Origin: Phallusia mammillata
Lineage: Eukaryota
DNA length: 64,000 nucleotides
NCBI GenBank assembly: GCA_965637545.1
Contig: OZ281494.1
Coordinates: 2,108,001-2,172,000 of the forward strand
Reading direction: 5' to 3'
A program made the translations under genes and the position numbers. Each line of letters begins with the position of its first letter. The first letter of the stretch is position 1. Below the pieces are notes generated by a model. The model was not told where the DNA came from and ran no database searches. It saw only the letters and a list, made by a program, of their open reading frames with translations. Shown in pieces: positions 6,301 to 42,058 of this stretch.

Positions 6301-9300
6301 TGTTAGTGTATATTTGAAGGCCTGAGCATCACTAAATTGATGAACAGATTTCAGTGTATAGAGTTCTTATGTAAAACCTGTATTTACTTTGCAGGATGAG
6401 GTGGATGGGATGAGTGTTGAAACTGCTACAGCCATCGCAGAGTTTGATTTCTTGAACCCAGATGCTGAAGAACCAGGTCAGTTTGTTGGAAAAACGATAG
6501 ACACAAGTCAAAAAGTCAAAACTAACATGAACTATGTCCTTGATGCTAAGCCATACACTGAAGGTTTTTTATGTAGATGTCTGTTGATTTTGTTTGCTTA
6601 ACTTAATTTGTTTGACAAACAATTAAACTTGCAGTGGGTAAAACTTGCTTTTTGTGGCTGTTGAAAATTTCACTTCACAATACAAAGTGTTGACAACCTT
6701 CACTTTTACAGACGATACGAAAGCCACTGATTGGACGATTGACCCGAACAAACTGAATGCAATGAAACAACAATTTCTACTCGAGAAAAAGCAACAGAAA
6801 AAGAAAGGAATGAAAAGTGAGTTAACTGTTTTTCCCCAAATTTGGTGACTTTTTGACAAGAAAAACTGCATTAAACATGAATTACAAACTTTGAAAACAT
6901 ATGGTTGGTATACCATTGCACTAATGTACTGAACATGCAACTAGTGTATTGTCTGTTTCCATAAGCGTTTCATTTTGAGCTCCCATGAAGCAATAGCTTT
7001 TCTCTCAAACACCACCACAAGATATGTTATAAGTTATAACGTGTAGACTTTTTTTGACTTAACTTTCTTTATCCCATATTATCTCACAGGACCAGCAAAG
7101 AAGCATTTGCAAGATATGCTTCAGACATTTCAAGGAGCCGAGATGCAAAAAACAAATGATGACATTGATATCCATATACCCGAAGAAGGTTAGTTGGTTG
7201 TTAATATTAAAGCCGACATAAGTATATCTGATAAGTACCGAATAGCCATGGATTCAAATCCCATCACCCATCACAGAGGGATATGGCCCGGATTAGGTGA
7301 TGATCCAGATTAACCAAATACGATTTAACCGAAGTAACTTTCTGCCGTGTGGTGGAAAGATTGAACAGTATTTATATGTAATGAATTGCACATTCTATGC
7401 TGATTTGACTGATTAAACGAAAGCTTTGGTACATCACTAGTTGCACACAGGATTGATTCTAAAACGCAGCGTACACATGGTGCGATCAGATTTGTCGGTC
7501 ACTACCCTGTTACACAGGCTGATTCATGCAGTCTGTTCTAACATTATACTTACATTACAGGTACTTTATGTTTGTGAATGGATATTTATATGATGTTTTA
7601 CTTTATAGAGAACCTCCCATTCACCGTCGGAGGGGGTCAGACCGGCGACGAATCAATCGAGACTGCACTTGGACTTGGAGCTTTAGCCGGACTTACTGTG
7701 GCCAATGAAGCGGATCCACTTGCTTACGATGTATGAACTTAATTAAATGAGTTTCGTTTTCGTGTTAACATAGCTTGTTGTAATAGAACTTTTCCTCTTA
7801 AATGGGATAAAAGTGTTGATGCAATAAATGATGTAACAATTGTTTACTTGTGTTATGACATACATTTGATTGTTACGATATACTTATGATGTCAGAGCAT
7901 GTCCGGAGCAAAGAATGCTTGGTTTTTCAACACGAAAAATTCTTTAAATTGATGGTTGATTCTCCAACCTTTTCAAATTACTGTTGTTTTGTGTTTAATT
8001 CCATTTCAAGATGCTACTTAAGCTATTGCTCCCAGGCATAACATCAAGTATATAAACTTGATGCTACTTAAGCTTGAAATAATGTTTTTAAAACGAACCT
8101 TACACGACAGATGTCAGCTACTAAGGAGACTTTCCGAAAAACCTGGAGCCCGAAATTCACGCTCCGGAGCCACTTTGACGGGATCCGGGCGATCCGGTTC
8201 CTTCCCACCGAGTCAGCGGTTCTAACTGCGTCCGAAGACAACACGATGAAATTGTGGAATTTAAACAAACCTCTTCCGAATAAGAAGAGTCAAGCTTTGG
8301 ATGTTGAGCCGATCTACAGTTTCCGTGGACACGTGTAAGGAAATTGAAAACTTATGAATATGTTTGTTTAGTCAAGTCAAATTTTATTTGCATTTTCACT
8401 TTATCATCACAGTTCCATTGTTGAACGGTTAAGTAAACAGCAAGGACACCGAAAAAAACATGGGTTGTCGAGTCAAGTTTTACACCAAATACGTATTTAA
8501 ATTTATTGACGAATTCAACTTATGATAAAACCTGTAGTTTGTTGCTTATTACAGTATTTGTAATAACATCATGCGAAAAAACGGCACTGATATTTACATG
8601 TTCACATAATCTCAGTGACCATGCTTTGCAATTTGCATGTGACAATGCTTGCGCACGGCTTATCTCGGTATGACGCCTTTTGCAGTTCATCAGGCGTTTG
8701 TGATTTAACCAAAAACATATCGTAATACGCTGTTCAATGACGCCTTCAACGGGCCAGGCGTACTATGATTTATATATGAGTGTGCCGTGATCGCTGGTCT
8801 GAATAGACGCTTCAGGGCTGATACCAGTTGTGATTTAATGTTCATCTTAACTAAAAAGCATATATTTTTGTATTTTCGTACTATACACTATGTATACAAT
8901 TCAATTTGCAAGTTTTGCCCATTAGACCAAGTACGACCTGGTTGTCCTTAGTGTTTTCTGTAATTTAGACCGTAGACCGAAAATGTTTCGTCTTGTAATT
9001 GCAACGACGATTACTGCTGAAGATCTATTTCCGCGCCAGCTAAAGTTTTTTTTCAGTTTCATGTTTTAAAAACTTTCTTAAATCTTTGCAGAGGAGCAGT
9101 TTTGTGTCTGGATGTGAGCGCTGATGGGGTTTTCTGCTTCAGTGGAGGAATCGACTCATCTGTAAGATGTTGGGCTCTTCCTAATATCAACATTGATGCG
9201 TACGACACATACGGTAAGGAGAATTGCTCTTTTCATTATCCAATAACCAAACTTATTACCTCACTAAAATTCAGTTAAAAATTGATTGTATTAAAAGTCT

Positions 9301-11982
9301 ATTTTATCATTATAATTACGTCAGTATTTAACTATTTGGATATAACGTCATTATTTGACGTTCATGGAAGACATGTATTGTGAAGTTTTATTCATTACGT
9401 AAGAAGTGCGTAAAAAGTCCTTGTGTCTACAACCATCTTTTATGACGTCACGTTACGTTTAGACGTGACGTAATTTGCTACTTTTGTTGTTTGTTCTGTA
9501 AACTATCTCCCTAATTGTGTAAAGTTGACTGTTTCATATTGTTCAACAAAAATGTTTGGAATTTCATGGGCAGATTCTTCACTGGCCGGAGAGATATTGG
9601 TCGGACACACAGACGCTGTTTGGTCGCTCTCGTATTCCAACACTCGTCAACAGCTCCTATCTGCTTCAGCTGATAATTCCATCAAATTATGGAGGCCGAC
9701 TTCAAATGATCCGCTTGTACAGACTTACACTGTTGACGGTGAGTTGAGTTTACATGCGACGGCAACTGTTTTGTTCTTGGGTTGTGTGACTAAATATTAC
9801 ACTGTGGTTGGTAAGTGGAGTTTAGCAAAACTAAGAAATTGTTTACACTCGGTTTTAAGTCATTCCACAACCTTATAAAGTGTATATATTGTAATTAAGT
9901 TGTCATGCACCATCCGTATCTAACAACAACGGGCATTACATGCATGGTAAAAAGCAAGATCGATATCAGAGTTAGGCTGGTGAAATTAATACACAACAAA
10001 AGGTTGATGTGACCTTCAGTTGCTTAGTACGTGTGACGTAAAGGTGTGTTTTATAATCATTGACATGACGTTGGCCAGGTTTTTAGTATGAACACGCAGG
10101 TTTACCACAAATACAAATGTTGTCTCTATTTTGCAAATTGGAGAAAGCGAAAGTTTTTGTCGATTTTTATAGAATTTTCCTGTCATGGTTACAAAAGAGG
10201 TCAACACGCAAATTACCCTTGGGAGCAAATTCATGTGATATCATCCTTGTTCCTACCATTGTTGATTGAACCTTCGTATTAACCGATGTATTTGAAATAC
10301 TCACAAATGTACTGCAGGAATACAACTAATGTAATCTCTATTCAACTCTATTCAAACTCAGATTGATGAAGAAAATGCTATTAAAACAGAAAACAACTTA
10401 GTTAACATTGACTGACCAAACTGTGAAATTGCATTGTTAACCTTGCACAATTATCCTACCACACATCTCATGTACGAAATTGCCTCAAGCTGAATAATTG
10501 ATGTTTTTCTGCAGGACCTTCAACGCCCACTTGTGTTGAGTTTGTACAATGTGATTCCAACCACGCGGTGGTGTCGCATACCGACGGAAAAGTTGTCTTG
10601 TATGATCTCGAAACAGGGAAAACACCTGTTATTCTCTCTGAAAACGACACAGGTAAAATCGATTTAGAATCTGCTATGTCGTTTAACTATGAATATTTGT
10701 GCTTTTGTACTACAATATTGACATGAATTGATTGCATTGATTCTGTTTAGAATACTTCCTAATTTACCGATTTTTTTGCATTATTTCTCTCTGATTATCG
10801 ATATGCATTCTAATTCTTTTGTTTTTGGTGCGATACGTTACTGTTTAATTTTGAAATAATGACAAATATGCTTTGGTTACTAAATTTGGCTCGCTAGAAT
10901 ATAAACTAAATTACAACTTTGCAGAATTTATTTTGTTTGGAGATTTGACAGCAAATTAACCTAAATACATCACGTGACAAATATTTTAATCTCAGGTCGA
11001 GTAAATGCAGTCGCAACTCACCCAACCATGCCTATCACCATGACAGCACACGACGATCGTCACATCAAGTTCTTTGACAATTCCTCAGGTAAAAAAAACT
11101 GCTGGTCGGGTTACCTCGTCTGATGTTGATCACAACGGTCGTAGGTTCACTTAAAGAGCTTGTGTGTATGTATGTACAGACACATAAAAATCTATGCTAC
11201 ACATAAACTGATGTGTGGCCACAGTGTGCACATCTAATGATGCTCACAATGGTCCTCAGTGCACTAAGTGAGCTTGTGTGCCTGCCCAGACACATGAAAA
11301 TGCATGCTGCGCATAAACTAGTGTGTGGCCACAGCGTGCATTCAAAGTTGCTCACATTAGTCTTTATACAAATTCGCATGTTAATTGTTTTCAACTAATG
11401 TTAGCTATTTCTTGTAGTCATATTACGGTGTTTCGGGTTCATATGTTGAACTGTTTCATTCCAGGAAAGTTGATCCATTCTATGGTTGCCCATCTTGATT
11501 CGGTGACGAGTCTCTCCGTTGATCCAAACGGTCTCTACCTTCTTTCAGGAAGTAAGTACACGAAAACGGAAATTAACTCTTTAAAACGTCAACATCTTTA
11601 CTAGACTCGCTCTTGACACACGTTTAGTTTACGAAAAGCCTGAAGTTACTCGGTTTAATTGATGTTTTTGAGTTGTAAATATATGTGGCCCTTTTACAGA
11701 AAAAAAATAACAAAATTTGCACTGCATATCGCGTGTAGTGTACAAATGAGGTATAACTTGAAGTAATTTTAATTCGTAAATCTACCACCAACCGTCCAAT
11801 CTCCCCCTGCAGGTCACGATTCCTCAATTCGACTGTGGAATCTCGACAGCAAAACCTGCATACAAGAGTTGACGTCACATCGCAAGAAGTTCGACGAATC
11901 AATTTATTCTGTTGCTTTTCATCCGAGCGCAACTTACATCGCAAGTGCAGGGGCCGACGCCCTCGCTAAGGTCTTCGTATGA
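322..11982 (+). CDS. STRN: Striatin (STRIPAK scaffold, PP2A B''' subunit), 5'-partial; 17 coding exons in window
   Basis: Exons with AG/GT ends and consistent phases: 322-435, 2220-2323, 2390-2457, 3162-3237, 4442-4600, 5381-5546, 6395-6476, 6712-6816, 7090-7188, 7609-7730, 8111-8334, 9092-9213, 9574-9738, 10515-10652, 10996-11088, 11465-11551, 11813-11982 (2094 nt, 697 aa + TGA). Hallmarks: YSMPGILHFIQHEWSRFEMERAQWDVERAELQARIAFLQGERKGQENLKRDLIRRIKMLEFALKQER (N-terminal coiled coil), WRHGRQLLRQYLQEVGYSDTILDVRS (CaM-binding region), WD40 repeats ending SAGADALAKVFV*. Start exon lies upstream of the window. Confidence 0.97.
2500..2868. mobile_element. Non-autonomous hAT-like MITE in striatin intron
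   Basis: Terminal inverted repeats CAGGGTTGCCA...TGGCAACCCTG, internal repeated AAATAAGGAC motifs, imperfect 8-bp flanks (CTAATAAA / TTTATAAA). Confidence 0.65.
5100..5232 (-). mobile_element. Fragment of the MITE family seen at 50819-51003 (inverted)
   Basis: Reverse complement matches 50819-50945 (CAGTGCTGGATTAACCATTAGGCAAAGTAGG...GTGCCTACAGGCCAGTCAAAAATCCAGGCCAC...). Confidence 0.7.
5890..6245. mobile_element. hAT (Charlie-type) MITE
   Basis: Left end CAGTGGTTCTCAACC, degenerate right end ...AAAAGTTGCTACTG, perfect 8-bp target-site duplication GGCTAATC (5882-5889, 6246-6253). Confidence 0.8.
11150..11370. repeat. ~105-bp tandem repeat (minisatellite family), about 2 units
   Basis: Unit ...CATAAACT(G/A)(A/G)TGTGTGGCCACAG(T/C)GTGCA... 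repeated; same family at about 21585-21880, 27240-27540 and one unit at 58225-58320. Confidence 0.75.
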
Positions 11983-12243
11983 ACGCGTCACAATACGACG
12001 CGTGTGACGTCATAGTCCACTTGTAATAGGCTATTTGTGACGTCACGATACCGTAAAGTGACGTAGAAACCCTGCGGCACGTCTGACGTCATAGGATATC
12101 GCTATTATGACGTCATAGGTCAGCCTTGTGACGACATCGTGCAGTTGCTTACTCCATTTTAGTGGTCTTGTTGATTCCAGTTACGTCACTGCCCAATCAA
12201 GTGCTTTTGGTCCGTCGTTTATGAGACCAGCTCTGTGACGTCA
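11870..12243. promoter_or_regulatory. Cluster of TGACGTCA (CRE/ATF-type) palindromes at the striatin 3' end
   Basis: Perfect TGACGTCA at 11870, 12005, 12038, 12084, 12108, 12236 plus near matches; function not demonstrated. Confidence 0.4.
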
Positions 12244-15200
12244 TTTATAGCTGTTGTTTCGTGTCGCATGCCTCGATGACGCGTAACTTTGAAAAGAAAA
12301 TGTTGTAAGCTTGATTATTTATCGCGCTCCGTACGGTCGCCGCTTTTGTTACGTCATAATGCGTTGTGTAGAAATGCTCGTTCGCATTGCTCAAGTATTT
12401 TCTTGTCGCGCTTGATTCGGTTTGGTCACGTGGTTTCGTACCTCTGCCTTCGCCCAACGAAATCTAAAGTTCAAACTCTATTGGACACAATTCTATGGAA
12501 GTCCAGAAACTGCGCCTCTAGTGGTTACATTTATATTCGTACGGCACCGTCAGAGGGCGCTGCAGGGTTCGGTGCTTTTCTGGTGCAAAGTTTCATTCTG
12601 CATCTCATCACTTCATCATTGAGGTATCCTCCAGGGCTGCTTTGACCCGAAACACTTCTTATCCTACTTGGTGATCTTCACACCGATTCGTGCGATTCCC
12701 GTTTTAATTCAGCACATGTACTCAAGTTGCTTCCGCACCAATCAGTGTCAATTTGCCCTGTTTTTCTGTGTTTCCCATTTGTAGAAAATAGTTACTCGCT
12801 GAAACGAGCGGTTCTCGGAGCTGATTGGCTGTATCAGTCACGTGGAAAACCGGCTGTGTTGTTTCATTTTAGCAAACCGGTCCAGTTTATATTGTAAGAT
12901 GTAGAATCTTTCAAAACCCGGCAAAGCTCATTGCTTTTCAGTTTCCTTGAGCGATAAATATCCCCAATACATAATATGAACGTCGCTTGCGTTTGTGTTT
13001 TGCCGCCCGGGCAAATGTATTTCATCTACCTGAAAAATCTCTTTGCTGCGCTGTATCTTCTGTATGCGACTGAAAATGGGACCTTGGACAAAAAATTATT
13101 TCAACACCGATGAATAGGACGGTTTCCCTCATTCTATATGTTTACATAAACGCGAGTGTTTGTTAGAGATTTTCTATTGGGAAGTTCTCCAAATCGCCCT
13201 AAAAATGCGGCCACACGTTGAAAAACTTTAGACATCTCAGCGCTAAACCGTAATCAGTTCATGTTGATTTTGAAATTAGTTCATGTGGACGTTCTTCTAA
13301 GAGCAATTTGATTTTATACCAAAACAAATATTTGCGTGATTGATCCTTTACACAAAATTCTTATCATTTACCATCTTCTTATCTGCAACAGTTTTGTAAA
13401 AGCAAATTGACTTTGATTCGTGTTTCGACGCGACATTGACTTTGCAACACATATCTCCAGTTTTTTCCCTATCTTGTGCTTGTGAAGCTTGACCCTCTGA
13501 AAAACGGCAGTCGTATTTTTATCGACACACGATGTCGCCTTGTGCTGCGTGACGTGTTGTCACAATTTCAATAGATAACTAGCTTTGTTCATAATTTTGT
13601 GTGGTGTATTGATTAGGCTTATTCAGGTTTGGAGTAAAAACAAGCAGACTTAGGGATTATAAGTGCGATCAGTTTAGGGGTCGATATGTTCTTCAGAAGT
13701 CTAAATTAGCTAAGATCTTAACGTGCGAGTAATTGCCACCAATGAGTAAATTGATATTTTTTCTGGGGGTAAATACATTTTTTTCCTTTGACATCCTTCT
13801 GTGACATCATTTTTGGTGATCTGGATGTCCTTATGAGGAAACAACGGTTAAGAATCACCGACCACTAAACCGAATGTGGTTAATCGCATTGCCAGTATGG
13901 CATGCTTTTCTATGCGATTAGGCGGACGATTTTCTTAACAAACGTAAGACTGAGTTTGGATTACAATACCTTTGTAATTAAACGGTGTACTTGATTAACC
14001 GGTTTCGTATGCAGAAAGAGGTGGATCTCCCACGTAAATGTTTTGTTGTGTTTTTGTCCATTTGGGTTCTGGTCAGCAAACTATCACATTGTTTTTCAGC
14101 CACGTTAAACCGACAGATATACTCCTTTTGCCACAAGAGAAATCGGTTAAAAATATTTTTCTTATTGTGAGATCATTTGTGATAAAAAGCAATTTCATCC
14201 GTCGCATTTTAGTTGCAAGTGTTTTAGACTGGAACGTTAGTCTGTCATAAGCTCACCCCTAACTTACTGCGGGACTAACTGATTTCAAGAGGAGCGTAAG
14301 TATTAAACTACATTGTGTAATTTTGAAAAAAGTGTACAAAACCGTAAGTCAAACAAAATCAATCGATCTAGACACGAGGTTTGTGAAGAATATTTTACCA
14401 AAGTTTTTTGGTATAATCAATTCCTGTAAACGAGTAAAACCTAAACTTATTCAAAATGAATCGCCCTGTTTAGCTTAGAACAATGATCACTCAGAAACTG
14501 CGTCTGTAACCAGTTCATTTTACTACAAACTCTGCTTTATTACTAAACTGTGTACTGAATGTTCCCATGCAAATGGTTTGCGAAAAATACCTGAGGAAAC
14601 AACATTAAACACGAAACCCTAAACATTGCTGCTTATCCCTCATTGGTAACCTTGTCACTTGCCTATTGCATGCACAACTAAGTCCGCTTATTTTCTATAT
14701 TTACAAAGCCTTGCAGTATATGATCCACGCTTCAAGATTGGCTGAAAAAAAAAAACGTTCAAGCCCTGGCTAAACTTGCCTTCTCAGCGCACCACGTAGT
14801 GACTCGATGTCACAATAACTTTACTCGAGAGTAATGAAAATTATTTATTATTTAATTACAAGTGTGTTGGGTGATTTCAGATAATCTCGGACCTTCACTT
14901 TGAGCATTAACCTCCAAGTATGGTGGTGACACAATCACAAATGCCGTAAGTAATCTCATAACATTCTGGGCACTTTGCCTTGCAAAAGCATAATCCAACC
15001 AGCAGAAGAAAAATACCCAACTGCAAAAAAAAACAATACAAAACATAACTGATAATTATGGATTGAAGGAAAGTTTTAAGCCGGTCTTGCCGATACGCAA
15101 ACTATGACCACCGCCGACATTTGGATAATTTTCGAATTGTCTTTTGTCTGAAATATTGTTTTTCTTTTGTTGGTGGTCGATGTAACGTCATTGCAGCCGA

Positions 15201-16831
15201 TCAGACTTGCACTTAAATTAAAGCTTTAACCTGAGTGGTTGCTTCACTTATGAACGTTTTGTAAAATTACACATTCTCGTCTTACAACGCATTGTAGACC
15301 TTATTATCTTTGGTGCATTTCAACATAAACAAGTAAGAATTAACCCAGCATACGAAACCACATACAAACTATAAAGCACTTTCGCTTTGGTTTAACTGTT
15401 TGTGTTTTGGTGGCATGTTAAAAGACTTCTCCGAAATAAGAAAATTATTAGCTATTATGGTAAGTCATTGCCAGAGTCGGGTTATGCACTCTTTACAAGT
15501 GGCTTAAAATCAGTTCGGTCTTTTTCCCCAGATATAGATGGCGCAAATGTTGAAGAGGGACTTATTTCAAAGTTGCATGAATATTTTTTGTTGATGAAGA
15601 AACAACAAAATGTAAGGCACAATGACGTGACGATACGCAACTATACGATGACTTGCCCTCTATTTAAAACCCTTTTTCGATATAACATGCTTTTACATTT
15701 GTGCAATAATTATAGTTTCTTTACATAACACGACCCTTCAGCAATTATCACAAACGGCAATCTCCAGAAAAGAAAAGAAAAACGGTGTGGTGGTTCATTT
15801 ATGTGCTGAGGTGCCATGAATATTTAGCACCGAAAAATTTCAGATACGCATCCTTAATGCCCTTCTAAGTAAAAATGTATCCAACATTCGGTTTGCCGAA
15901 TCGTTTCAGCGGAATCGGCCATTATTGCAAAGATTCGGTTTCGGCCGAATAATTTGTTACGTTTCGGCCGAAACCTGGTCTTTTACGAACACAGATTAGT
16001 AAAGTACCACGCAATCTTTTAACCTACACCACAACTAAAATCGCGTAAATTGTTATAATTTTAAAACATTATCTATTTCAACTATTCTGCACTAATTGCC
16101 TGGTAGACAAACTTATGTTCTTACGTCATAAACAATTCGGTTGATTCGGCCGAGTTTATGCGACAAAACTGTCAAATATTCGGTATCGGTCGAACCGAAA
16201 TATAACCGATTCGGTACATCACTACTTCTAAGCACGCTTACACAGCTTAGTGCTTAGTCTAGCCCTGGCCATTATTTGTAAATAAAGTTTTTGTCATTTT
16301 ACATTTCGATTGGTGATTTACATATAAATGTGACATTTTAAAGGCAGCGATAATTTTCCACATGCTTAAACAAGACATTCTATCCATTACAAAGCAGTCC
16401 AGCACGCTATTGATGTAACCTCTGTTTTCTTGTAATAAAACGGGAAAGGCGCTGCTCGTACTACGTCACACGGTTTCATCGGGTTCAAATCATCTTTTTT
16501 TGTTTGTTACACATACAGCCACTGTATTAGTAAGTGAATTTAGGTTTGGGTCTAGTACTGAATATAAACTGGATAATTCAAGTCCAGAGATAAGCCATGA
16601 AACTGGCTATAGGTTTGGCTCAAAGCTTATGAATTGTTTGTGGTTTTGTCCCAGTTGAAAATATTTGTAATCATTTATCAGACATCTTCATTTTTTTCTG
16701 CAGGATTAATAAGGATGACTGTAACGAGGAAAAGTTTGCATCATTTGAAAAAGATTGTGATTGAAAACTGAGCAGTTACAACGTGTTTAGCATGTTTGTG
16801 CAAAACAGAAAATAACAACATTAACAAAATT

Positions 16832-19800
16832 ATGACAGGCAAATACAGCATAGTGGCGTTGTGTGTTTTGCTTCTGTTAGTGAACGTTGTCCAAGGTACG
16901 CAATCGCTTGTTAAAAGTAACACACTGTAAACCAATTTGGGTAAAAACAACCCAAAAGCGTTGGGTATCTTGGTGGGGAAACCCATTTTTTTAGGTAGTT
17001 TGAACCCAAAATTGGTTGGGTTAAATACAGTTTTGCCCTATTGATTTACCCAAAAATGTCCAAAATTGATTGAACGTTGTTTTACACAAAAATCATACAG
17101 ATTTCATGTTTTATTTTTAGAAGAAACACACTTTTTTCCAAACTAGCTACAGAAGAAAAAACACGAAAAAACTAATTACAACATACAACACAATTATTCA
17201 TACATTGACAAGTCTGGAATATCAAAATGATACTTGCAAAAATTGTAAAACTTTATCAACATGCAGACAGTATTCATAGTAAAGTACACAATACAATGTA
17301 AATACGGCTTTGATGCCTTTGATGATACCATTCACTTTCAGTATACAGGGTTTTGCTCAGAAAACAAGGTTATTTTTGTGAGCGAATGAAATCTCTCCAT
17401 GTACAACCCAGAAGGGTTGCTGACGATCACCCAATGCTGCTCCCGAACCTTCAAATGGTGTGTTTGCCTGAATATTTAAATATTACCAGCAAACAAACAA
17501 AAACAACATAGTAATTTACCAAATCTAGACAAATACAAACCATATGCTATCCCATACGCAAAATTTAACAAAACATAGGGCTACCAAAAAAATCTCTTTT
17601 CAACCATAAACGCCATTAATAATTAATGTGAAACTTACTTCCAAGTATCAATCTATTTCTGTGGGACGTCCAAGTCACCAAACCATTGGGCAACAAAACA
17701 GTTTACCCAAAATATGTGGGTATGTTGCTGCTGTACCCAAAGTTCTCTCGATCGATTTACCCAAATTGGTTTACAGTGCAAGTAACTTAAAAGCTAAAAA
17801 AATTCAAACGATATATCAAAGCAAGTCGTAACATGGTTTCGCCCAATTTTTAAAATATATAATTCTTTATTGTACTACAGTATGTTCACAAACAACAGAC
17901 GAGTCATGCATAAACGTCAACGAGGACCGCAGAATATGCTTTGGTGAGCTAAATCAAATGTAATAAATCATTGATAATTGTTTTAACATTTTGTCTTATA
18001 GTTTGTGAAGAAAGTGAATACAAGAATCTTAGTTGTACAGACGAAGAAAAAATGCTGAACTTTCCTGTCGACTTTTGTAAAATACAAAGTAATGAGTAAG
18101 TATAGTTTTAAACAATACAGCAATTTGTTCGCGCAATGCTTGTAATTCTAAGAAGGAACAGAAACCACAACAACGTCGTTCGTTGTTTTCGCTGACAAAT
18201 TAGGAACATAAGTTCGAAATTGAAAATGTAAATGTTGAAATTGAAAATGTTACTTGTAACTTTATCGTGTTTATATGTAAAAGGCTATAAACAATTCCTA
18301 CTGGAAGTAGAAACGGCTTACGACTCAATCAAATTCTTGTGGTGTTCGTATGAACTGGGCTACCCTGTCTAAAGTCAAGGAATTTTTATTTATGTGATTT
18401 GTTGTACATCGTATTCATTCGGTTAAAATCGTTACCTTAATCAGATGTCCGTTTTGTTTCTTTTAAGGCCTTACACACCTTTTAATCAAAAATGGCCTGG
18501 TTTAGTGGTTCTCAAACTTTTTAAGTTCATGGCAAGTTTTTATTCCTGGTTTTCCTGTTACCAGCTAAAAATGTTAAAATCTATTCCCGAAGCTTCAAAT
18601 GGATAAATGAGACTGATATTAGCAACGAAAGCGAAATGGGTTGGTAGTTGGGTCCAAATTACCAGTGAGAGTAATATCGAAGAATCAGTCATTTAACTTT
18701 GTATCAAAGTAATTAAATTTTTGTTATTTTTGGGGCGCACCTAGCAACCTACCACGACAGTTTGAAATCCGCATTCAATGTTTTGTATTTCGTTGTTTTT
18801 GTGAAGAAACTGCTCTAACTACAACGTAAGTTCAAGCTGCAAAAACAGAGAGAAACATAAGGAAATGGCGCAAATGATACGAAGCACTTGTCGCAAAAAG
18901 ACTGAATGTCAAATTCCTTCAGGAGCTTGGAGAAACGGACGCTACATGTTGATAACATTCACATGCAGAGAGTGTGGTGGTAAATACCTTTGAAATTCAA
19001 AGCTCCCTTGTTCAGTCTTTTAAAATCTTATCCACTTATGTCTTCTATATATCGTATAATGTATGCCTTGTAAGTTCGATTAATGAAAATGCTTAATTGA
19101 CGATATCCTATATCACATCTGCTCATTTTTAACACTAACTTAGATTTAGCATCAGAATTGTAATGTTTAGATGTGACGTGAAAGATATTATACTACTATT
19201 GTTTTTCGTTCTTATAGCTATTGTTACCTTAAGTAACTTTTAATATTATCTCGGAAAAAATGTTTTACAGAAAGCTGTACAAAAGAAGACATAGCATTTG
19301 AAGGGGAAAGTAATTCGTATCAAGCGCTGAAAATGCTTACCGAAACATCCACGATATACCAGGATAGAAAATCTGAGGCAAGAAGGTTTGGCGGAACAAT
19401 ACCCAACTCTGGTCCGTATCTGTCGGTCGATGACGTTCATCTCAATAACATTTCCACCAGTTCCACTTCGCCTTTTGTTGCTGCTTTGTCGGTCATTAAC
19501 ATAAACTCTTCTAGCAAAGAGCTTTTCAACAACCTGACAACCGAACTGACAACTACAAGATTAACTGATGTTCTCGCAATAGACGACCTACCCTTGGTCT
19601 CTATAGTCGTCGATCAAGAAGATGATTCGGAAGATTCGGAGGATTCGAAAGATTCGGATGATTCGGAGGATTCGGAAGACTCGGAGGATTCAGAAGATTT
19701 GTTTCAAACTAAATTGGCATTTTCTTTGTCGGTTCCAGGCACCACAAACTTTAAAACAGAAATAAAGCCAAAGTTGATGAAGATAGCTGGTGGTAGAGAT

Positions 19801-22150
19801 GTTCTTGTCAAATCAGTCAATTGGATTTGCGTTTTCATTGACCCTGAAACGTATGTGTTTTCAAGGAATGGCTGCGCACTGACAACTAGTGTGAATAGAT
19901 CACAAGTTTCATGTGCTTGCAACCATACCACCATATTTAGTGTGCTTCTTGCCGTGGACGCTGTCATTTTACCAGCTTACATTAAGGTAAATCAAATGCA
20001 TAGGTATACTGACATGAACGTTAATGCAGCTATATCATCAGTGTATAAACACGTACATATTACATCTTACTTCAAACGCAAAAATGTTACTAGTTAATCA
20101 AATGTAGTTTGTACCAGTATCTTAGGAACTTGGAGTCATTGCTTAAATTGTTGAGAAAAACATGAACTTTTTATCAGATCCTGTCTTACATCACCGAAAG
20201 CACAACAGTTTTGTTTCTCATCATTACCGTCATCACAATCTTCAACGTCCGCCATGCGATGGTGAACGACCGAATCTTCGTTCAAATCAACTTGTCGCTG
20301 GCTCTCATGATCTTCCACGCACTAAATTTGACCCATGACCTCGCTATGACGTATCCACAGCTGTGTGAGGCTCTGGCGGTTGCCATGCACTACTTCCTGC
20401 TGTCTTCCGGTAATATTCTATCTCAATCACACGCAACATGACTTCTGCATAGTTGAATTAAAGGATAATCAACACACTTTAACACCAAGACATAATCGAG
20501 GTCATCACCTTTGAAAACACATGGTGTTATACTATCTAATTGACAATAAGCGTCAATTTCTAGATTGTTGGTGATTTAACTTAGGTGATTTTCTAAAGTA
20601 AAATTATTCGCATTTTTCAAGAAAATATGAATGTGCAAGTGCAAACTTTGTTTGATCAACTTTACTTGGATGGTTTTAAAAAAAATCATGATGCGAATTT
20701 GTGATAATTAAACTCTGTGTAACATTAGTTATAAATTTAAATAAACTTGGATGTAAGTTCAGATAAAAACATATAGTCGTTCATCCTTTAGTTTTAACGA
20801 TATAGATATTTAAGGCTTATTAGTCTTTATCCACCAATTTAAGCAACGGACTGGGTGATTCGAGCTTCAAGTTTTAATTGCGAGTATTGTTTGAATAAAC
20901 TTATATTGAATGTTGTTCAACAGTGTTCTGGATGTTGGTGGAGGGAATCACACTTGCCATGAAAACTTCGTCCAAGTCTCTTCAATTCAACGCGATCGAC
21001 CCGACCAAGCTGAACGTAATCAGAGCTCTCGTCGGTTGGGGAATCCCCTCAATCATTACAGCAGCAGCAGCAGTTGTTGGTTTCGTCTTCACAGAGAATT
21101 ACCTCCTTCCAAGTGCGGTGTATCAAGCAGGGTTCAACACTTCCATGTACGACAATACCCTGCGTTGTTTCCTCGACCATCAATCCCATCTCTTCTACTG
21201 GTCGGTGATTGGTCCGATCTGTCTCTGCATTCTCATCAACCTCCTCATTCTCATCCACGTGGTTGTCTTTATTTCCCGCCTAAACGCTGACCAACCGCGC
21301 CGAGGCCGCGTCCGTCGCCCAAACGCGCATGAGAAAATCACAAGGAAGGTCAAGATTCTTGTGGTGGGTGACATCGCAAAGAAGTTGCTGCTGCTCACTC
21401 CTGTCATGGGAATCCCACTAGTGCTAGGAATATTTGTAGGTAAGGCTCTTTCTGTCACTTCTGCGCGCTACTCACGAGTTCCAGTCCCTATATGCTTAAC
21501 AATAAAACAGGATGAGACCATAGTGGGCACATCTAAGTTTTCTTCCGAAAGATTAAGTGTATGCTTAAACACCCCAAAACACACAAATTGGTGTACGGCC
21601 ACAACGTGCACATCTCTTGTTACCTACAGTCGTCCTTAGTGTACTGAGAGTGTTCGTGTGTGTGCTCAAACACATGAAAAACTTTGCTGCACATAAACTG
21701 GTGTGTGGCCACAGCGCGCACATCTAATGTTGCTCACAGTGGTCCTCAGGGCACTAAGGGAGCTTGCGTGTATGCCCAGATACATGAAAAACTTTGCTCA
21801 TAAACTGGTGTAAATAGCAGCGTGGTTATTTAATGTTACTCTAAGTGATCCTCAGTGTACTCAGTGAGCTTGTGTGTGTCAAGAATCAAGTTTACATCGG
21901 TTGACTACCATAAACGTTTTGCTTCACCAGCAATTCGCAACACCAAATTCTTAAAAATACAACACATTTCCATCCTATTATTGTTGCAGGGATAGGTTCA
22001 ACTGAGAGCAACGAGTTCTTCATGTTCACCAATGTGACGGTGAACGGATTGCAAGGTTTATTCATCTTCATCATCTACTGTGTGATGCAAGAAGAAGTTA
22101 GAGAAGCTGTGAAGAGAGCTTGGTCGCGGTTCCAGTGCGGATATGGCTAG
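16832..22150 (+). CDS. Adhesion GPCR copy A (signal peptide, degenerate SUEL/RBL-like domain, GAIN/GPS, 7TM), 672 aa
   Basis: Exons 16832-16895, 17881-17943, 18002-18095, 18807-18979, 19271-19986, 20178-20409, 20924-21439, 21990-22150 (2019 nt, phases consistent). Signal MTGKYSIVALCVLLLLVNVVQ; GPS CVFID...FSRNGC...SCACNHTTIFSVLL; family-B motifs FWMLVEG, GWGIP, NGLQGLFIFIIYC. Confidence 0.92.
16923..17778. mobile_element. CACTG-terminated (CMC/EnSpm-like) non-autonomous DNA transposon in intron 1 of aGPCR A
   Basis: Perfect 23-bp TIR CACTGTAAACCAATTTGGGTAAA, 2-bp TSD CA; the paralogous intron of copy B (about 23945-23960) is the empty site. Confidence 0.85.
19618..19698 (+). repeat. Coding 9-nt tandem repeat GATTCGGA(A/G) giving (Asp-Ser-Glu)n
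   Basis: EDDSEDSEDSKDSDDSEDSEDSEDSEDL in copy A; 27 nt shorter in copy B (ENDLEDSDDSKDLDDSEDL, about 25338-25391). Confidence 0.9.
21585..21880. repeat. ~105-bp tandem repeat in aGPCR A intron 7 (also about 27240-27540 in copy B)
   Basis: About 3 recognisable units with GTGTGGCCACAGCGCGCACATCTAATG...GGTCCTCAG...CATGAAAAACTTTGCT. Confidence 0.75.
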
Positions 22151-23863
22151 AAAACTTAATTTTCCATTTGCATCACGTCGCGAAACACAATGTGTATGAT
22201 GACAAAAGTGACGGAGTTTACTTACATGCTCATTTTCAAATAAAGGATGTTTTCTAGAAATGTAAAGCAGGAATAATTACATCTCTGGAAAGAAAAACTA
22301 AACTAAACTAAAAGCTGAAAAACCTTGACTCCTTTGCTGTAAATAACCAAAACCTATTTATGCTGTTACATGGTCTCGTGTAAAAATGCACAATCTTTTG
22401 ACATTGACCACTAAAATACTGTAGCAGATATCTACACAGACTTTGCCTACAAATGCAGCCTGGATTTTTGCCAAATCCAGGCAATATTTTTGGTCCAAAC
22501 GAGTCGGGAGTAACCGAAGTTTACTGCAGCTTAGCGCAGCTGACGTATATATGTAAATATCTGATCAAAGCATGTTTATTGTGCATTTTTCATTGGTGTA
22601 TTTGATTAACAACCAGACGTTGGAAGCAAAAAAATTATTTGCACATTTGTTTTACAATCTCTTTTGCTAGTTAAACCGAAATTCGGAAAGCGCTATTTGG
22701 CGGCTACAAACTCCTAGTTACTATGCTTTCGACTCTTTCCTCTTCAGCGGGTGCACACGTGTTTCTACATTTATTCTCATAAAAATGTGACTGTTAAACT
22801 CCAGCTGCTAAACTTTGGGCATCGTGTTATAGAAGGTTCTTTTGTAATATTTGCGACACTATTTTTCTTGTGCTGTACATTTATTTACATTTAAAAACAA
22901 AACAAACATAAACAACAATTGCTCCATGATTGACATCAACTGAAGCAACATTTAACACAAATACAACAACTTATCTTTTCTAGGCCATGCTTTCTCCCAG
23001 GGCTAGAAAATTTGTACAGATGAATAAAGTAGTTTTTTTACCTCGCCGCCATTGTGCAAGAGTGCAACTTGCAAATCAAATTCTAAACTATAGAGCATAA
23101 TGACAAAGCCTTAAAGCTCTAAAACAGACACATTGATCACAAAGTGCAAAGATAGAATGTTTGGGAAACACTGGAACAAAACAACAAGTTATGAACAAGG
23201 ATTAAGTATGAAGATTCTAGTCTTTTTCTTTTTCGAACACAGCTTAGTAAAGTACCACGCATTCTTTCAAACTACATCACAACTAAAATTGCGTCAATTG
23301 TTATATTTTTTGAAACATTTTCTATTTCAATTATTCTGCGCTAATTGCCCGATAGACAAACTTATGTTTTAATGTCAGTGACGCCTTAAGATTCGGTCAA
23401 AATGACTGTCGAATATTCGATTCACGCTCTCAGGTTATCCTCTGTTTTCTTGTTATGAAACGGGAAAGTCGCTTGCTCTTACTGCGTCATACAGTTACTG
23501 CAATGGCTTCAAATCATCTGTCATTCCTATCAGCATATACAGCCACTGTATTAGTACGTGAATTCAGGTTAGCGTCTGGTACTGTATATAAACTGGATAA
23601 TTTATGTCCAGAGATAAGCCATGAAATTGCCTAGACTTGGATCAAAGCTTGTTTGTGGTAAAACGTTTTAAGCTCATTTTGTCCCAGTTTAAAATATGTT
23701 ATCATTTATAAGTCATTTTCATTTTCTACAGCATTAATAAGGAATGACTGTAAAGAGGCAATGTTTACATCATTTGAAAAGATTGTGGTTGAAATTTTGT
23801 TCCACTGAACGGTTACAATGTGTTTAGCATGTTAGTGCAGTAAAAACAATTAACAACAAAATT

Positions 23864-26800
23864 ATGACAGGCAAATACAGCAAACTGGCTTTGTGTGTTT
23901 TCTTGCTGTTAGTAAACGTCGTCCAAGGTACGTTGTCCATTGTTGAATGTAACAATAATTTAAATGCCAAAAAAATACAAACGATATATTAAAGCAAACT
24001 GTAAGAAGGTTTCGAAAAACTTCTAAAAAATTAAATCCTTTATTGTACTACAGTATGCTCTCAAACAAACTGCGCACGATATGAGGACAAAGAGGGTTAC
24101 AGAAGATGCTTTGGTGAGCTAAATCTAAAAATAATATAAATGGATTAACACTTGAATATTTTGTCCTATAGTGTGTGATGCTGATGGATACAGAAATATT
24201 AGTTCTGCAGACGGAGGAAAAATGCGGAGATTTCGTGTCGACTTTTGTAAAATAGAAAGTAATCAGTAAGTAGTTTTAAACAATACAGTTTGTTGTGCAA
24301 CGGTGATAATTCTGAGATGCAGAAATGAAACCCGCAACAACGTTGTTAGTTTGCTAGTTGAGTCCAAATTAACATTGAGAGTACTATCGAAGAATTAGTC
24401 ATTTAACTTTGTATTATATAAATTAACTTATTTGGGAACGTACCTAGCTATACCTTCCACGACAGTTTGAAATCCGCTGCTTGAAAATCACAATATTTTG
24501 CATTTCATTGTGTTCGGGAAGAAACTGCGCTAGCTACAACGTGACATCAAGCTGCATCAAACAAAAGAAACATCATCAGAGGGTGCGAATGATACGAGGC
24601 ACTTGTCGCAAAAAGACTGAATGTCAAATTCCTTCAGGAGCTTGGAGAAACGGACGCTACATGTTGATAACATTCTCATGCAAAGGATGTGGTGGTAAAT
24701 ACCTTTGAAATGCATAGCTCCCTTTTTAAGTATTTTCAAATCTTATCCACTTATATCTTCTATATATCTTATAAACAGTTGTATGCCTCGTAAGTTCGAT
24801 TAATGAAAATGTTTAATTGACGATAACCTATATCACATCCGCGTATTTTTAACACTAACCTAGATTTTGCATCGGAATTTTAATGTTTAGATGTGACGTT
24901 AAAGATATTATACTACTATTCTTTTTTGGGGCTTATAGCTATCGTTACCTTAAGTAACTTTTAATATTATCTCGGAAAAATGTTTTACAGATAGCTGTAG
25001 AAAAGAAGACATCGAATTTGAAGGGGAAATTAATTCGTATGAAGCTCTGAACATGCTCACCGAAACATCCCTGATCTACCAGGATAAAAAATCTGAGGCA
25101 AGAAGGTTTAACAAAACAACACCCAATTTTGGTCCTTATTTGTCGGTTGATGACGTTCAACTCAATAATACCTCCACCAGTTCCACTTTGCCATTCGTTG
25201 CTGCTTTGTCGGTCATCAACATCAACTCTTCTAGCAAAGAGCTTTTCAACAACCTGACGACTGAACTGACAACAAAAAGATTAACTGATGTTCTCGCAAT
25301 AGACGACCTACCCTTGGTCTCTATAGTCGTCGATGAAGAAAATGATTTGGAAGATTCGGATGATTCGAAAGATTTGGATGATTCAGAAGATTTATTTCAA
25401 ACCAAAGTGGCATTTTCTTTGTCGGTTCCAGGCACCACAAACTTTAAAACAGAAATAGAGCCAAAGTTAATGAAGAAAGCTGGTGGTAGAGATGTTCTTG
25501 TCAAATCAGTCAATTGGATTTGCGTTTTCATTGACCCTGAAACGTATGTGTTTTCAAGGAATGGCTGCGCACTGACAAGTAGTGTGAATAGATCACAAGT
25601 TTCATGTGCTTGCAATCACACCACCATATTTAGTGTGCTTCTTGCTGTGGACGCTGTCATTTTACCAGCTTACATTAAGGTAAATCAAATGCATGGGTAT
25701 ACAGACATGAACGTTGAACACGGCTATATCATCAGTGTATAAACACGTATATAATAAAGCAAACTTCAAAAGCAACATTGTTATTAGTACTTTGCTCAGT
25801 AGTTTGGGAACATTGCTTAAATTATTGGGACTTTAAAACACAAACTTTTTTATCAGATCCTGTCTTACATCACTGAAAGCACAACGGTTTTGCTTCTTAT
25901 TATTACTGTCATCACAATCTTCAACGTCCGCCATGCGATCGTGAACGACCGAATCTTTGTTCAAATCAACTTGTCACTGGCTCTCATGATCTTCCACGCA
26001 CTCAATTTAATCCATGACGTCGCTATGACGTATCCACTGCTGTGCGAGGCTCTGGCGGTTGCCATGCACTACTTCCTGCTGTCTTCCGGTAATATTCTGT
26101 CTCAATAACACGCAACAGGGTTTACCTATAGTTTAATGAAAGGATAATCAACACGTTTTAACACCAAGACATAAGCGAGGTCATCACCTTTTGAAGACAC
26201 GGCACCAGAGTGATTTTCAATACTATACAACTAATAATCCACGTCAATTTAAAAAAATAAAATTTAGGGTTATTTTCCAAAATAAAATTAAACTGTTCAC
26301 GAAAATATGAATCTAAAAGGTACAAACTTTGTTTGATCAACAGTGCTGTAATGTTTTTTTGAAAAATCATGATAATTGTGAACTCTGTGCAACACTGGTC
26401 TACAAACTAAAATAAACTTGGATGTAAGTTTAGAAAAATACATTTAGTCGTTTACGGTTTATATTAAGCTCATTAGTCTTCATCCACCAATTTAAGCACG
26501 GACTGGGTAATTCTAGCTTCAAGTTTTGATTACGAGCATTGTTTGAATAAACTTATATTGAATGTTGTTCAACAGTGTTCTGGATGTTGGTGGAGGGAAT
26601 CACACTTGCCATGAAAACTTCGTCCAAGTCTCTTCAATTCAACGCGATCAACCCGACCAAGCTGAACGTCATCAGAGCTCTCGTCGGCTGGGGAATCCCC
26701 TCAATCATTACAGCAGCAGCAGCAGCAGTGGTTGGTTTCGTCTTCACAGAGAATTACCTCCTTCCAAGTGCGGTGTATCAAGCAGGATTCAACACTTCCA

Positions 26801-27815
26801 TGTACGACAATACCCTGCGTTGTTTCCTCGACCATCAATCCCATCCCTTCTACTGGTCGGTGATTGGTCCGATCTGTCTCTGCATTCTCATCAACCTTCT
26901 CATTCTCGTCCACGTGGTTGTCTTTATTTCCCGCCTAAACGCTGACCAACCGCGCCGAGGCCGCGTCCGTCGCCCAAACGCGCATGAGAAAATCACAAGG
27001 AAGGTCAAGATTCTTGTGGTGGGTGACATCGCAAAGAAGTTGCTGCTGCTCACTCCTGTCATGGGAATCCCACTAGTGCTAGGAATATTTGTAGGTAAGG
27101 ATATTTCTGTCACTTCTGCGCGCTACTCACGAGTTCCAGTCCCTATATGCTTAACAATAAAACAGGATGAGACCATAGTGGGCACATCTAAGGTTTCTTC
27201 CGAAAGATTAAGTGTATGCTTAAACACCCAAAAACACACAAATTGGTGTACGGCCACAACGTGCACATCTCTTGTTACCTACAGTCGTCCTTAGTGTACT
27301 GAGAGTGTTCGTGTGTGTGTGCTCAAACACATGAAAAACTTTGCTGCACATAAACTGGTGTGTGGCCACAGCGCGCACATCTAATGTTGCTCACAGTGGT
27401 CCTCAGGGCACTAAGGGAGCTTGCGTGTATGCCCAGATACATGAAAAACTTTGCTCATAAACTGGTGTAAATAGCAGCGTGGTTATTTAATGTTACTCTA
27501 AGTGGTCCTCAGTGTACTCAGTGAGCTTGTGTGTGTCAAGAAACATTAAATCAAGTTTACATCGGTTGACTACCATAAACGTTTTGCTTCACCAGCAATT
27601 CGCAACACCAAATTCATAAAAATACAACACATTTCCATCCTATTATTATTGCAGGGATAGGTTCAACTGAGAGCAACGAGTTCTTCATGTTCACCAATGT
27701 GACGGTGAACGGATTGCAAGGTTTATTCATCTTCATCATCTACTGTGTGATGCAAGAAGAAGTTAGAGAAGCTGTGAAGAGAGCTTGGTCGCGGTTCCAG
27801 TGCGCATATGGCTAG
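23864..27815 (+). CDS. Adhesion GPCR copy B, 663 aa
   Basis: Exons 23864-23927, 24054-24113, 24172-24265, 24522-24694, 24991-25679, 25857-26088, 26576-27094, 27655-27815 (1992 nt, phases consistent, no stops). Same motifs as copy A. Confidence 0.92.
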
Positions 27816-28369
27816 AAAACTTAATTTACCATTTGCATCACGTCGCAAAACACAATGTGTATGATGACAAAAGTGACGGAGCTTACTTACAAGCTCATTT
27901 TCAAATAAAGGATGTTTTCTAGAAATGTAAAGCAGGAATAATTACATCTCTGGAAAGAAAAACTAAACTAAACTAAAAGCTGAAAAACCTTGACTCCTTT
28001 GCTGTAAGTAACCAAAACCTATTTATGCTGTTACATGGTCTCGTGTAAAAATGCACAATCTTTTGACATTGACCACTAAAATACTGTAGCAGATATCTTC
28101 ATAGTCATTGTTTAAGCCTACAAATGCAGCCTGGATTTTTTTTTTAATCCAGGCAATATTTTTGGTCCAAACGAGTCGGGAGTAACCGAAGTTTACTGCA
28201 GCTTAGCGCAGCTGACGTATATATGTAAATATCTGATCAAAGCATGTTTATTGTGCATTTTTCATTGGTGTATTTGATTAACAACCAGACGTTGGAAGCA
28301 AAAAAATTATTTGCACATTTGTTTTACAATCTCTTATGCTAGTTAAACCGAAATTCGGAAAGCGCTATT

Positions 28370-28584
28370 AACATGTCGGAAACTGATAGGTTGACAATGA
28401 ATATTTGAGTGCATTTATTTACACAACTATCTGTTATCCGGTTCATATATGACTTTCTGAAGGTGCTTGCAACCACTAAGATATTCCCAATCAATGCAAG
28501 GATGCCCATGATCCATATAAACGCAGTCAAAATAGGGTTGGCAATCATTTCTTTCTGATTGGAGAAAACAGTGTTACGAGAGCT
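28370..28584 (-). pseudogene. 215-bp inserted fragment of the LDLa-GPCR coding sequence (copy of 30146-30360)
   Basis: Matches the hinge-TM1-ICL1-TM2 coding segment of copy 1, flanked by a 110-bp direct duplication (28260-28369 / 28585-28694). Confidence 0.9.
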
Positions 28585-29214
28585 TTTCATTGGTGTATTT
28601 GATTAACAACCAGACGTTGGAAGCAAAAAAATTATTTGCACATTTGTTTTACAATCTCTTATGCTAGTTAAACCGAAATTCGGAAAGCGCTATTTGGCGG
28701 CTACAAACTCCTAGTTACTATGCTTTCGACTCTTTCCTCTTCAGCGGGTGCACACGTGTTTCTACATTTATTCTCATAAAAATGTGACTGTTAAACTCCA
28801 GCTGCTAAACTTTGGGCATCGTGTTATAGAAGGTTCTTTTGTAATATTTGCGACACTATTTTTCTTGTGCTGTACATTTATTTACATTTAAACACAAAAC
28901 AAACAAAAACAACAATTGCTGCATGATTGACATCAACTGAAGCAACATTTAACACAAATACAACAACTTATCTTTTCTAGGCCATGCTTTCTCCCAGGGC
29001 TAGAAAATTTGTACAGATGAATAAAGTAGTTTTTTTTTACCTCGCCGCCATTGTGCAAGAGTGCAACTTGCAAATCAAGTTCTAAACTATAGTGCATAAT
29101 GACAAAGCCTTAAAGCTCTAAAACAGACACATTGATCACAAAGTGCAAAGATAGAATGTTTGGGAAACACTGGAACAAAACAACAAGTTATGAACAAGGA
29201 TTAAGCATGAAGCT

Positions 29215-32200: not shown

Positions 32201-32615
32201 ATTTAGTTTCAACAGTATACAAAAAAAGCAACCATTTCCATGCTACACTGCAGAACAAATGGAACTTAGTAAACAATTGCAGACATCATTATCATCAATA
32301 CATCTTAGACTTTCTGTGGCAATATCTTAGACATGATTGGCTGGTCTTTGACACAAGTGAATTAGCTTGGGCCTTAGGGTATTAAAGTAAAAGTATAAAT
32401 CGTTGATCTAATTATGCAATGTAATGCGCCCAATTTGCTATTGCAAAGGCCTATAGAAAGGCGCTGGCAGCTATTGCGAAATAATGACTTATTTCAACTA
32501 CTAATCAAAGACTACATACATAACTTAATATTTACTTACCGTAAGTTTCAAGCCCGTCCGATGGGAACTTTTTAATCAACAGAACCAAAGAAAACAACAC
32601 AACAGTCCTAATCAT
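29215..32615 (-). pseudogene. LDLa-repeat GPCR copy 1, nonsense codon early in exon 2
   Basis: Signal exon 32615-32540 (MIRTVVLFSLVLLIKKFPSDGLETY, donor GTAAGT), exon 2 32147-29215 after TTTTTTAG acceptor; in-frame TAA at 32118-32116 where copies 2 and 3 have TAC (QYC-Y-P). The rest of the frame is open. Confidence 0.72.
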
Positions 32616-35002: not shown

Positions 35003-35098
35003 GGTTTATTCATCTTCATCATCTACTGTGTGATGCAAGAAGAAGTGAGAGAAGCTGTGAAGAGAGCTTGGTCGCGGTTCCAGTGCGGATATGGCTAG
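35003..35098 (+). pseudogene. Orphan 3' part of the aGPCR last exon (GLFIFIIYCVMQEEVREAVKRAWSRFQCGYG*)
   Basis: Near-identical to 22055-22150; lacks the acceptor, fused out of frame to the pentraxin ATG at 34986. Confidence 0.88.
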
Positions 35099-36186
35099 AA
35101 AACTTAATTTTCCATTTCAATCACGTCGCGAAACACAATGTGTGTGATGACGAAAAGTGACTGGGAGCTTACTTACAAGCACATTGTCAAATAAAGAATG
35201 TTTTCTACAAATGTGAGGCCGGAAAAAATTACATCTCTGGAAAGAAAAGCAAAACTAAACTAAAAGCTGAAAATCCTTGACTCCTTTGCTGTAACTAACC
35301 AAAACCTATTTATGCTGTTACATGGTCTCGTGTAAAAATGCACAATCTTTTGACATTGACCACTCAAATACTGTAGCAGATATCTTCATGGACTTTGTAT
35401 CAGCCTACAAATGCACCCTGGTTTTTTGCCAAATCCAGGCAATATTTTTGGTCCAAACGAGTCGGGAGTAACCGAAGTTTACTGCAGCTTAGCGCAGCTG
35501 ACGTATATATGTAAATATCTGATCAAAGCATGTTTATTGTGCATTTTTCATTGGTGTATTTGATTAACAACTAGACGTTGGAAGCAAAAAAGGCCGAATA
35601 GTTGCAGAATTATTTGCACATTTGTTTTACAATCTCTTTTCTCAGTTAAACCAAAATTCGGAAAGCGCTATTTGGCGGCTACAAACTCCTAGTTACTATG
35701 CTTTTGACTCTTTCCTCTTCAGCGGGTGCACACGTGTTTCTACATTTATTCTCATAAGAATGTGACTGTTAAACTCAAACTGCTAAACTTTGGGCTTCGT
35801 GTTATCGAAGGTTCTTTTGTAATATTTGCGACATATTTTTTTACGATGTACATTTATTTACATTTACACACAAAACAAACCTAAACAACAATTGCTGCAT
35901 GATTGACATCTACTGAAGCAACATTTAACACAAATACAACAACTTATCTTTTCTAGGCCATGCTTTCTCCCAGGGCTAGAAAATTTGTACAGATGAATCA
36001 AGTAGTTTTTTTACCTCGCCGCCATTGTGCAAGAGTGCAACTTGCAAATCAAGTTCTAGACTAGAGCATAATGACAAAGCCTTAAAGCTCTAAAACAGAC
36101 ACATTGATCACAAAGTGCAAAGATAGAATGTTTGGGAAACACTGGAACAAAACAACAAGTTATGAACAAGGATTAAGTATGAAGCT

Positions 36187-41962: not shown

Positions 41963-42058
41963 GGTTTATTCATCTTCATCATCTACTGTGTGATGCAAGA
42001 AGAAGTGAGAGAAGCTGTGAAGAGAGCTTGGTCGCGGTTCCAGTGCGGATATGGCTAG
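41963..42058 (+). pseudogene. Second orphan aGPCR last-exon tail
   Basis: Same junction and sequence as 35003-35098. Confidence 0.88.

Follow-up and report, generated by a model that had tools for sequence, protein, structure and literature searches.

Two neighbouring adhesion G protein-coupled receptor (aGPCR) genes of the ascidian Phallusia mammillata, hereafter copies A and B, begin with a cysteine-rich N-terminal tip encoded by exons 2–4, whose amino acids change far faster (several-fold) than those of the remaining receptor. They lie in a 64,000-nucleotide stretch of the genome (the window; NCBI GenBank assembly GCA_965637545.1, contig OZ281494.1, positions 2,108,001 to 2,172,000, forward strand), to which all positions refer. 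An initial annotation of the window had remarked on the excess of amino-acid-changing over silent codons in the tip exons and attributed it to diversifying selection on a ligand-binding surface. The contrast between the tip and the remaining receptor is robust. The amino-acid-changing sites of the tip evolve at about the neutral rate, and positive selection is not needed to explain the codon ratio. We give even credence to a history of tandem paralogues in which the tip drifts at a near-neutral rate, the remaining receptor is kept by purifying selection, and the 3' third has been converted.

The contrast within the receptor carries this reading. Non-synonymous and synonymous differences (Nd:Sd) between the copies numbered 35:6 in exons 3 and 4, compared with 32:33 in exons 5 and 6 (Fisher p = 1.7e-4). 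The ratio of non-synonymous to synonymous divergence (dN/dS, or omega) was 0.26 in exon 1, 0.32 in exon 5, 0.14 in exon 6, and 0.19 in exon 7; by maximum likelihood (ML), it was 0.35 for exons 5 and 6 together, significantly below 1, and ~1.2–2 for the tip. For the variable part of the tip, defined as exon 3 with the first half of exon 4, replacement divergence was 0.231, not different (p = 0.55) from the divergence of the flanking intron segments (p-distance 0.17–0.33, pooled 0.207). Synonymous divergence in the neighbouring exons fell in the same range (exon 1, 0.34; exon 5, 0.165; exon 6, 0.20). It is because the replacement divergence of the tip matches both intron and neighbouring synonymous divergence that we describe its rate as approximately neutral.

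Gene models

The window is AT-rich (GC 32–42%) and contains no runs of N. Its self-comparison resolved two tandem units of ~6–7 kb each (15979–23217 and 23227–29216), with one plus-strand gene per unit, copy A in the first and copy B in the second. Gene models were rebuilt exon by exon from the A/B comparison of the window sequence. Each copy has eight exons, all fourteen introns are GT-AG, and the spliced reading frames run uninterrupted from ATG to stop (672 amino acids in A, 663 in B). The exons are as follows.

16832..16895, + strand: copy A exon 1, coding part; ATG and a 21-amino-acid hydrophobic signal peptide, ending in phase 1 at a GT donor; placed by alignment with B
17881..17943, + strand: copy A exon 2, 63 nt; start of the cysteine-rich tip; AG/GT sites, in-frame indels relative to B
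18002..18095, + strand: copy A exon 3, 94 nt; variable, acidic stretch of the tip; codons relative to B: 15 replaced, 1 silent
18807..18884, + strand: first half of copy A exon 4, variable; differs from B at 24% of nucleotides; holds the within-species variants at 18850 and 18872-18873
18885..18979, + strand: second half of copy A exon 4, conserved (TCRKKTECQIPSGAWRNGRYMLITF...); differs from B by 4% and includes a 76-nt stretch identical in B
19271..19986, + strand: copy A exon 5; linker rich in Ser/Thr and acidic residues that contains an Asp-Ser-Glu (DSE) repeat, then GAIN-B/GPS (CACNHT↓TIFSVL)
20178..20409, + strand: copy A exon 6, transmembrane helix (TM) 1 to TM3; Pfam 7tm_2 E = 0.014, omega 0.14
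20924..21439, + strand: copy A exon 7, TM3 to TM6; Pfam 7tm_2 E = 3e-16
21990..22150, + strand: copy A exon 8; TM7 and a short tail up to the stop codon; homologous exon in the related locus L001
23864..23927, + strand: copy B exon 1, signal peptide; placed by alignment with A
24054..24113, + strand: copy B exon 2, 60 nt; A/B comparison and gene model
24172..24265, + strand: copy B exon 3, 94 nt; basic where the A exon is acidic, with Ser in place of one Cys
24522..24694, + strand: copy B exon 4, 173 nt; A/B comparison and gene model
24991-25679, 25857-26088, 26576-27094 and 27655-27815, + strand: copy B exons 5-8; linker, GPS, seven-transmembrane region (7TM) and tail

Codon changes in the tip

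Copy A 17881-18979 was compared with copy B 24054-24694, and codons split across exon junctions were included in the counts. A recount agreed exactly with the figures first given for exon 3 (15 replaced codons, 1 silent) and exon 4 (16 and 1); from the exon 2/exon 3 junction codon through the exon 4/exon 5 junction codon, the ratio of replaced to silent was 32:2 over 90 codons. Exon 2 is indeed hard to align (CSQTTDESCINVNEDRRICF in A, CSQTNCARYEDKEGYRRCF in B), and its alignment requires in-frame indels. The loss of one cysteine and the shifts in charge reported at the outset were likewise found: the mature tip has 12 cysteines in A and 11 in B, the missing one having become serine in exon 3 and the others being kept, and its net charge is 0 in A and +13 in B. 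Divergence is distributed as a mosaic, with exon 2, exon 3 and the first 78 nt of exon 4 variable and the last 95 nt of exon 4 96% identical.

The neutral yardstick applied in the initial annotation, about three replacement changes per silent one, is unsuitable for per-codon counts in low-degeneracy codons at such divergence. It fails because synonymous sites are few and codons hit more than once hide silent changes. The codons of exons 3 and 4 are A-rich and of low degeneracy (e.g. GAA, AAA, AAC, AGA), with only 50 of 270 sites synonymous (~19%). At ~20% divergence many codons are doubly changed, and one with a silent and a replacement change is scored as replaced. When the 87 full codons were substituted at random, at the density observed and without creating stops, ~28–29 replaced and 5–6 silent codons resulted. 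The observed figures were 30:1, the replaced count being as expected under this null (P = 0.34–0.48).

Selection tests were based on two sequences, with no outgroup. By the Nei-Gojobori method, omega was 1.58 in exon 3 (Sd 2.5 over 16.8 sites; Nd 17.5 over 79.2 sites), 1.04 in exon 4, 1.25 across exons 3 and 4 with split codons included (Fisher p = 0.68), and 1.21 in the variable part (p = 0.81). Pairwise ML (GY94) gave 3.9–4.1 for exon 3 (p = 0.18–0.19), 1.9–2.0 for exons 3 and 4 (p = 0.19–0.21), 2.2–2.7 for the variable part (p = 0.13–0.22), and 1.2 for exons 2–4 (p = 0.59–0.65). At these site counts, a one-sided p < 0.05 is reachable only for omega of at least ~2.1–2.3. The strong excess over neutrality originally claimed is not upheld: dN/dS is not significantly above 1 by either method, an outcome that the initial annotation had itself named as speaking against its claim.

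Probable homogenisation of the 3' part

A 100-column identity profile showed that 20903..23155 in copy A and 26555-29154 in copy B are 97–100% identical, intron 7 and the 3' flank included. The upstream introns of the two copies are 71–86% identical. We read this pattern in the sequence as probable recent gene conversion or unequal crossover in the 3' third of the gene pair.

Drift, selection or decay of the tip

In the history that we put forward, the tip would have changed about neutrally after duplication at most of its non-cysteine positions in exon 2, exon 3 and the 5' half of exon 4. Its last third and most of its cysteines would have been kept, as would the reading frame and the splice signals. 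The remaining receptor would have stayed under purifying selection, and its 3' third would lately have been homogenised by gene conversion. The high ratio of replaced to silent codons would then be the product of a loosely constrained, disulfide-scaffolded tip, a divergence of ~20–25%, and A-rich low-degeneracy codons. No tip homology was detected in L001, the nearest relative found, which fits a weakly constrained tip. We infer a ligand-contacting module that may be free to drift or to shift specificity.

Several observations weigh against this history and lean toward positive selection, diversifying or directional, on a ligand-contacting tip surface, in which a subset of non-cysteine sites would be driven and still variable within the species. 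The driven sites would notably include the acidic-to-basic switch in exon 3 and a helix-like patch in exon 4. Purely silent codons fell below the random null (P(silent <= observed) = 0.009–0.025), and every point estimate of omega in the tip lies above 1, those of 1.2–4 favouring selection. Within the overall change in net charge, the shift in exons 3 and 4 is +9, against a null mean of +2 to +3 with a standard deviation of ~3.4 (P = 0.02–0.07). Nucleotide divergence in exon 2 (0.367) exceeds that of the introns (p = 0.008). The substitution spectrum also differs from that of the introns, with A<->G accounting for 19 of 41 differences where ~9 were expected from the composition-corrected intron spectrum (P <= 0.0005); because of this excess, the accepted changes must have been filtered and are not a random sample of mutations. 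Such filtering fits selection for particular replacements, and fits equally well the purifying removal of radical transversions or the keeping of purine-rich splicing enhancers in short exons.

Variation within the species points the same way. Two publicly available DNA runs from this species, compared over ~2.7 kb of unique sequence, differed from the window only at 18850 (G>A) and 18872-18873 (AA>GG). All three differing positions are replacement changes inside the variable patch of exon 4, the surrounding 1.1 kb is otherwise identical, and there are no nearby silent or intronic variants. The variants encode E15K and Q22R; A and B have different residues at both sites, and each change is toward the residue of copy B. 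The probability of such clustering is ~8e-4 to 8e-3 (post hoc). One conversion tract copied from B was considered as their source and rejected, the intervening A/B differences being unchanged and the base at 18873 unlike that of B.

Against positive selection stand the omega tests, none of which rejects omega = 1, and the match of dN to intron divergence. The exon 2 excess hinges on an ambiguous alignment with uncertain indels, and the secondary signals are marginal or come from tests chosen after the data had been seen. Of what was first proposed, the fast tip in intact aGPCR models stands; diversifying selection is not demonstrated, and we regard it as a tentative possibility that still deserves weight. 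The phrase "ligand-binding surface" goes beyond the data, because neither a domain nor a ligand can be assigned.

An omega near 1 could also reflect relaxed constraint in one lineage, with the tip of copy B alone decaying and its 3' part preserved by conversion from A. The Cys-to-Ser change in exon 3 leaves B with an odd number of cysteines, the polypyrimidine tract before its exon 4 is weaker than in A, and its 3' part, which conversion would have maintained, is 97–100% identical to A. However, the frame, all splice sites and the other 11 cysteines of B are intact, exons 3 and 4 are free of indels, and the variants in copy A itself shift toward B residues; changes cannot be assigned to a lineage from two sequences. 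We consider decay of the B tip distinctly unlikely. Hardly credible is an artefact in which exons 2–4 are unspliced, or A and B are assembly duplicates, making the codon comparison meaningless. In its favour, the species' RNA-labelled runs gave no contig on the gene, and the two runs compared matched intronic repeats only. Against it, both copies give intact, phase-consistent GT-AG models with complete reading frames. Conservation of the splice flanks exceeds the intron background: the 20 intron bases upstream and 12 downstream of exon 2 are identical in A and B, around a barely alignable exon interior. The tip exons have single-copy depth in the DNA runs, and A and B carry different intron insertions. 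Coding constraint on the tip exons, which we count in favour of the drift history, is visible in their indels: exons 3 and 4 have none, where 3.8 would be expected from the 9 events found in 632 intron columns (P = 0.022), and all those in exon 2 are in frame. Nor do exons 3 and 4 contain a stop codon (P = 0.12 under random substitution).

Receptor architecture and family

The predicted protein comprises, in order, a signal peptide, the ~110-amino-acid cysteine-rich tip, a Ser/Thr/acidic linker, GPS, 7TM, and a short tail. Exon 1 of both copies encodes MTGKYS and a hydrophobic stretch, recognised by eye as a signal peptide. The adhesion-GPCR label of the initial annotation is right, as exons 5–7 match Pfam GPS and 7tm_2: GPS (PF01825) matched exon 5 residues 185–225, directly before TM1, above the gathering score (E = 3.3e-8), and 7tm_2 (PF00002) matched exon 7 strongly and exon 6 weakly. 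TM7 in exon 8 was assigned by reading the sequence, in agreement with L001. Of the GAIN domain, the GPS/GAIN-B part alone is recognisable, with a putative cleavage site H-T↓T (consensus H-L↓T/S). Exon 5 also contains a 9-nt GATTCGGAA repeat (Asp-Ser-Glu), with 8.4 copies in A (19624-19699) and 5.4 in B (25344-25392), forming an acidic linker of variable length.

A HMMER search of 1.84 billion representatives returned 46 weak matches, the self match being absent. Nearly all of them, including the best (39% identical, E = 2.5e-10), were limited to the GAIN-B/GPS stretch; in exon 5, only residues 141–243 match relatives. Ten of these matches were scanned with Pfam; all carried GPS and most 7tm_2, and none had an N-terminal Pfam domain. 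The nearest relative found, L001 (the locus of relative P0003), has exons 5–8 in common with the pair. A word search of protein libraries with exon 5 gave no matches. In the DNA runs, depth on exons 5–7 is 2–7x, which implies further copies of this family in the genome.

The tip itself resembled nothing in the searches made with it. Local blastp against the N-termini of the HMMER-matched proteins found no similarity, and exon 4 had no significant BLASTP match in the cysteine-rich N-terminal region of the protein P0029. Exons 2, 3 and 4, each searched alone, had no credible Pfam match. A phmmer search of the PDB with exon 4 returned a single match, the designed helical protein 4D2, which covered no domain-level stretch and was judged spurious. 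The tip is an undescribed cysteine-rich module.

Comparison with known receptor systems

Latrophilin (ADGRL) is an adhesion GPCR with a small cysteine-rich module at its extreme N-terminus. The conserved end of exon 4 (C..K..C...G....Y.L..F.C..C) loosely recalls the rhamnose-binding/SUEL lectin domain of latrophilin. Unlike latrophilin, the tip exons 2, 3 and 4 searched singly gave no Gal_Lectin (PF02140) match at E <= 10, and a SUEL-lectin identity for the tip is no more than a tentative lead. In mammals, the EGF-TM7 aGPCRs CD97 and EMR2 are neighbouring paralogues whose ectodomain EGF repeats are homogenised by gene conversion. Copies A and B are likewise neighbouring paralogues with one part homogenised and another diverging, but in A/B it is the 7TM and 3' part that are homogenised and the tip that diverges.

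Among the adhesion GPCRs of Ciona, 24 of 30 are "unclassified" and 21 of 30 have GPS as their only domain (Kamesh et al. 2008, PMC2396169); the majority of adhesion GPCRs in ascidians are orphan receptors that lack a recognisable ectodomain (PMC2396169). Copies A and B resemble the unclassified Ciona set (PMC2396169) in being ascidian receptors with GPS and 7tm_2, no recognised N-terminal domain, and no clear orthologues outside the lineage. They differ from it in having a tip built from three small exons, not described there, and in being a very recent tandem pair with the 3' part homogenised by conversion. By sequence, the gene pair belongs to these known ascidian-specific GPS-only adhesion GPCRs, with a tip that diverges rapidly; the best library match to A/B is just 39% identical, in the GPS region only.

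The s-Themis sperm receptors of Ciona self-sterility combine a hypervariable region with REJ, GPS, and LH2 (PMC7018956). They share with A/B an ascidian membrane receptor, a GPS motif, and a variable N-terminal region, a functional analogy. Unlike A/B, s-Themis is polycystin-1-like and not 7tm_2, is multi-allelic, and is paired with v-Themis, whereas variation in A/B lies mostly between paralogues, with two variant codons within the species and no partner gene seen. By this analogy, the tip could be a hypervariable recognition module in which diversifying selection acts on the same residues (E15K, Q22R and the exon 3 charge reversal) both between paralogues and among alleles, and the receptor could serve self/non-self, gamete, or microbe recognition; we think this unlikely.

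Introns and neighbouring genes

Intron 1 of copy A contains an 800-bp stretch (16946-17745) with no counterpart in B. DNA-run depth on it is ~6–14-fold the single-copy baseline depending on the bin, and fragments of it occur in RNA-labelled contigs; it is probably a transposable-element insertion. A further ~457 bp in intron 3 of copy A (18185-18640) also has no B counterpart and has single-copy depth, and loss from B is more likely here than insertion of a repeat into A. Intron 7 of both aGPCR copies contains a short high-copy element of ~110 nt, found in tandem pairs at 21580-21812, 27234-27550, 11119-11362, and 58192-58319, with a depth in DNA runs of roughly 90-fold (X1) to 130-fold (X2) the single-copy baseline.

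Downstream lies a second receptor array. A single-exon open reading frame of 938 amino acids on the minus strand (29215-32031) encodes LDL-receptor class A (LDLa) repeats and a rhodopsin-type 7TM (Pfam 6e-29 and 1e-18). It is part of an LDLa-repeat GPCR array of at least three tandem units, ~96% identical, with a period of ~6.96 kb (28584-39373 vs 35545-46314), matching the ascidian-specific LDLRR-GPCR expansion of Ciona (PMC2396169). A direct segmental duplication (5079-15507 vs 50966-62795, 82–95% identity) brackets both GPCR arrays.

Implications

The main lesson as it stands is that per-codon counts of replaced and silent changes overstate selection in diverged, A-rich short exons. Because the receptors of this recently duplicated pair are alike in almost everything but a small disulfide-rich tip, they offer a natural experiment on the part that sets ligand specificity. 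If larger samples were to show omega above 1 together with allelic hypervariability, these genes would point to a new family of recognition receptors in a lineage known for its self/non-self systems.

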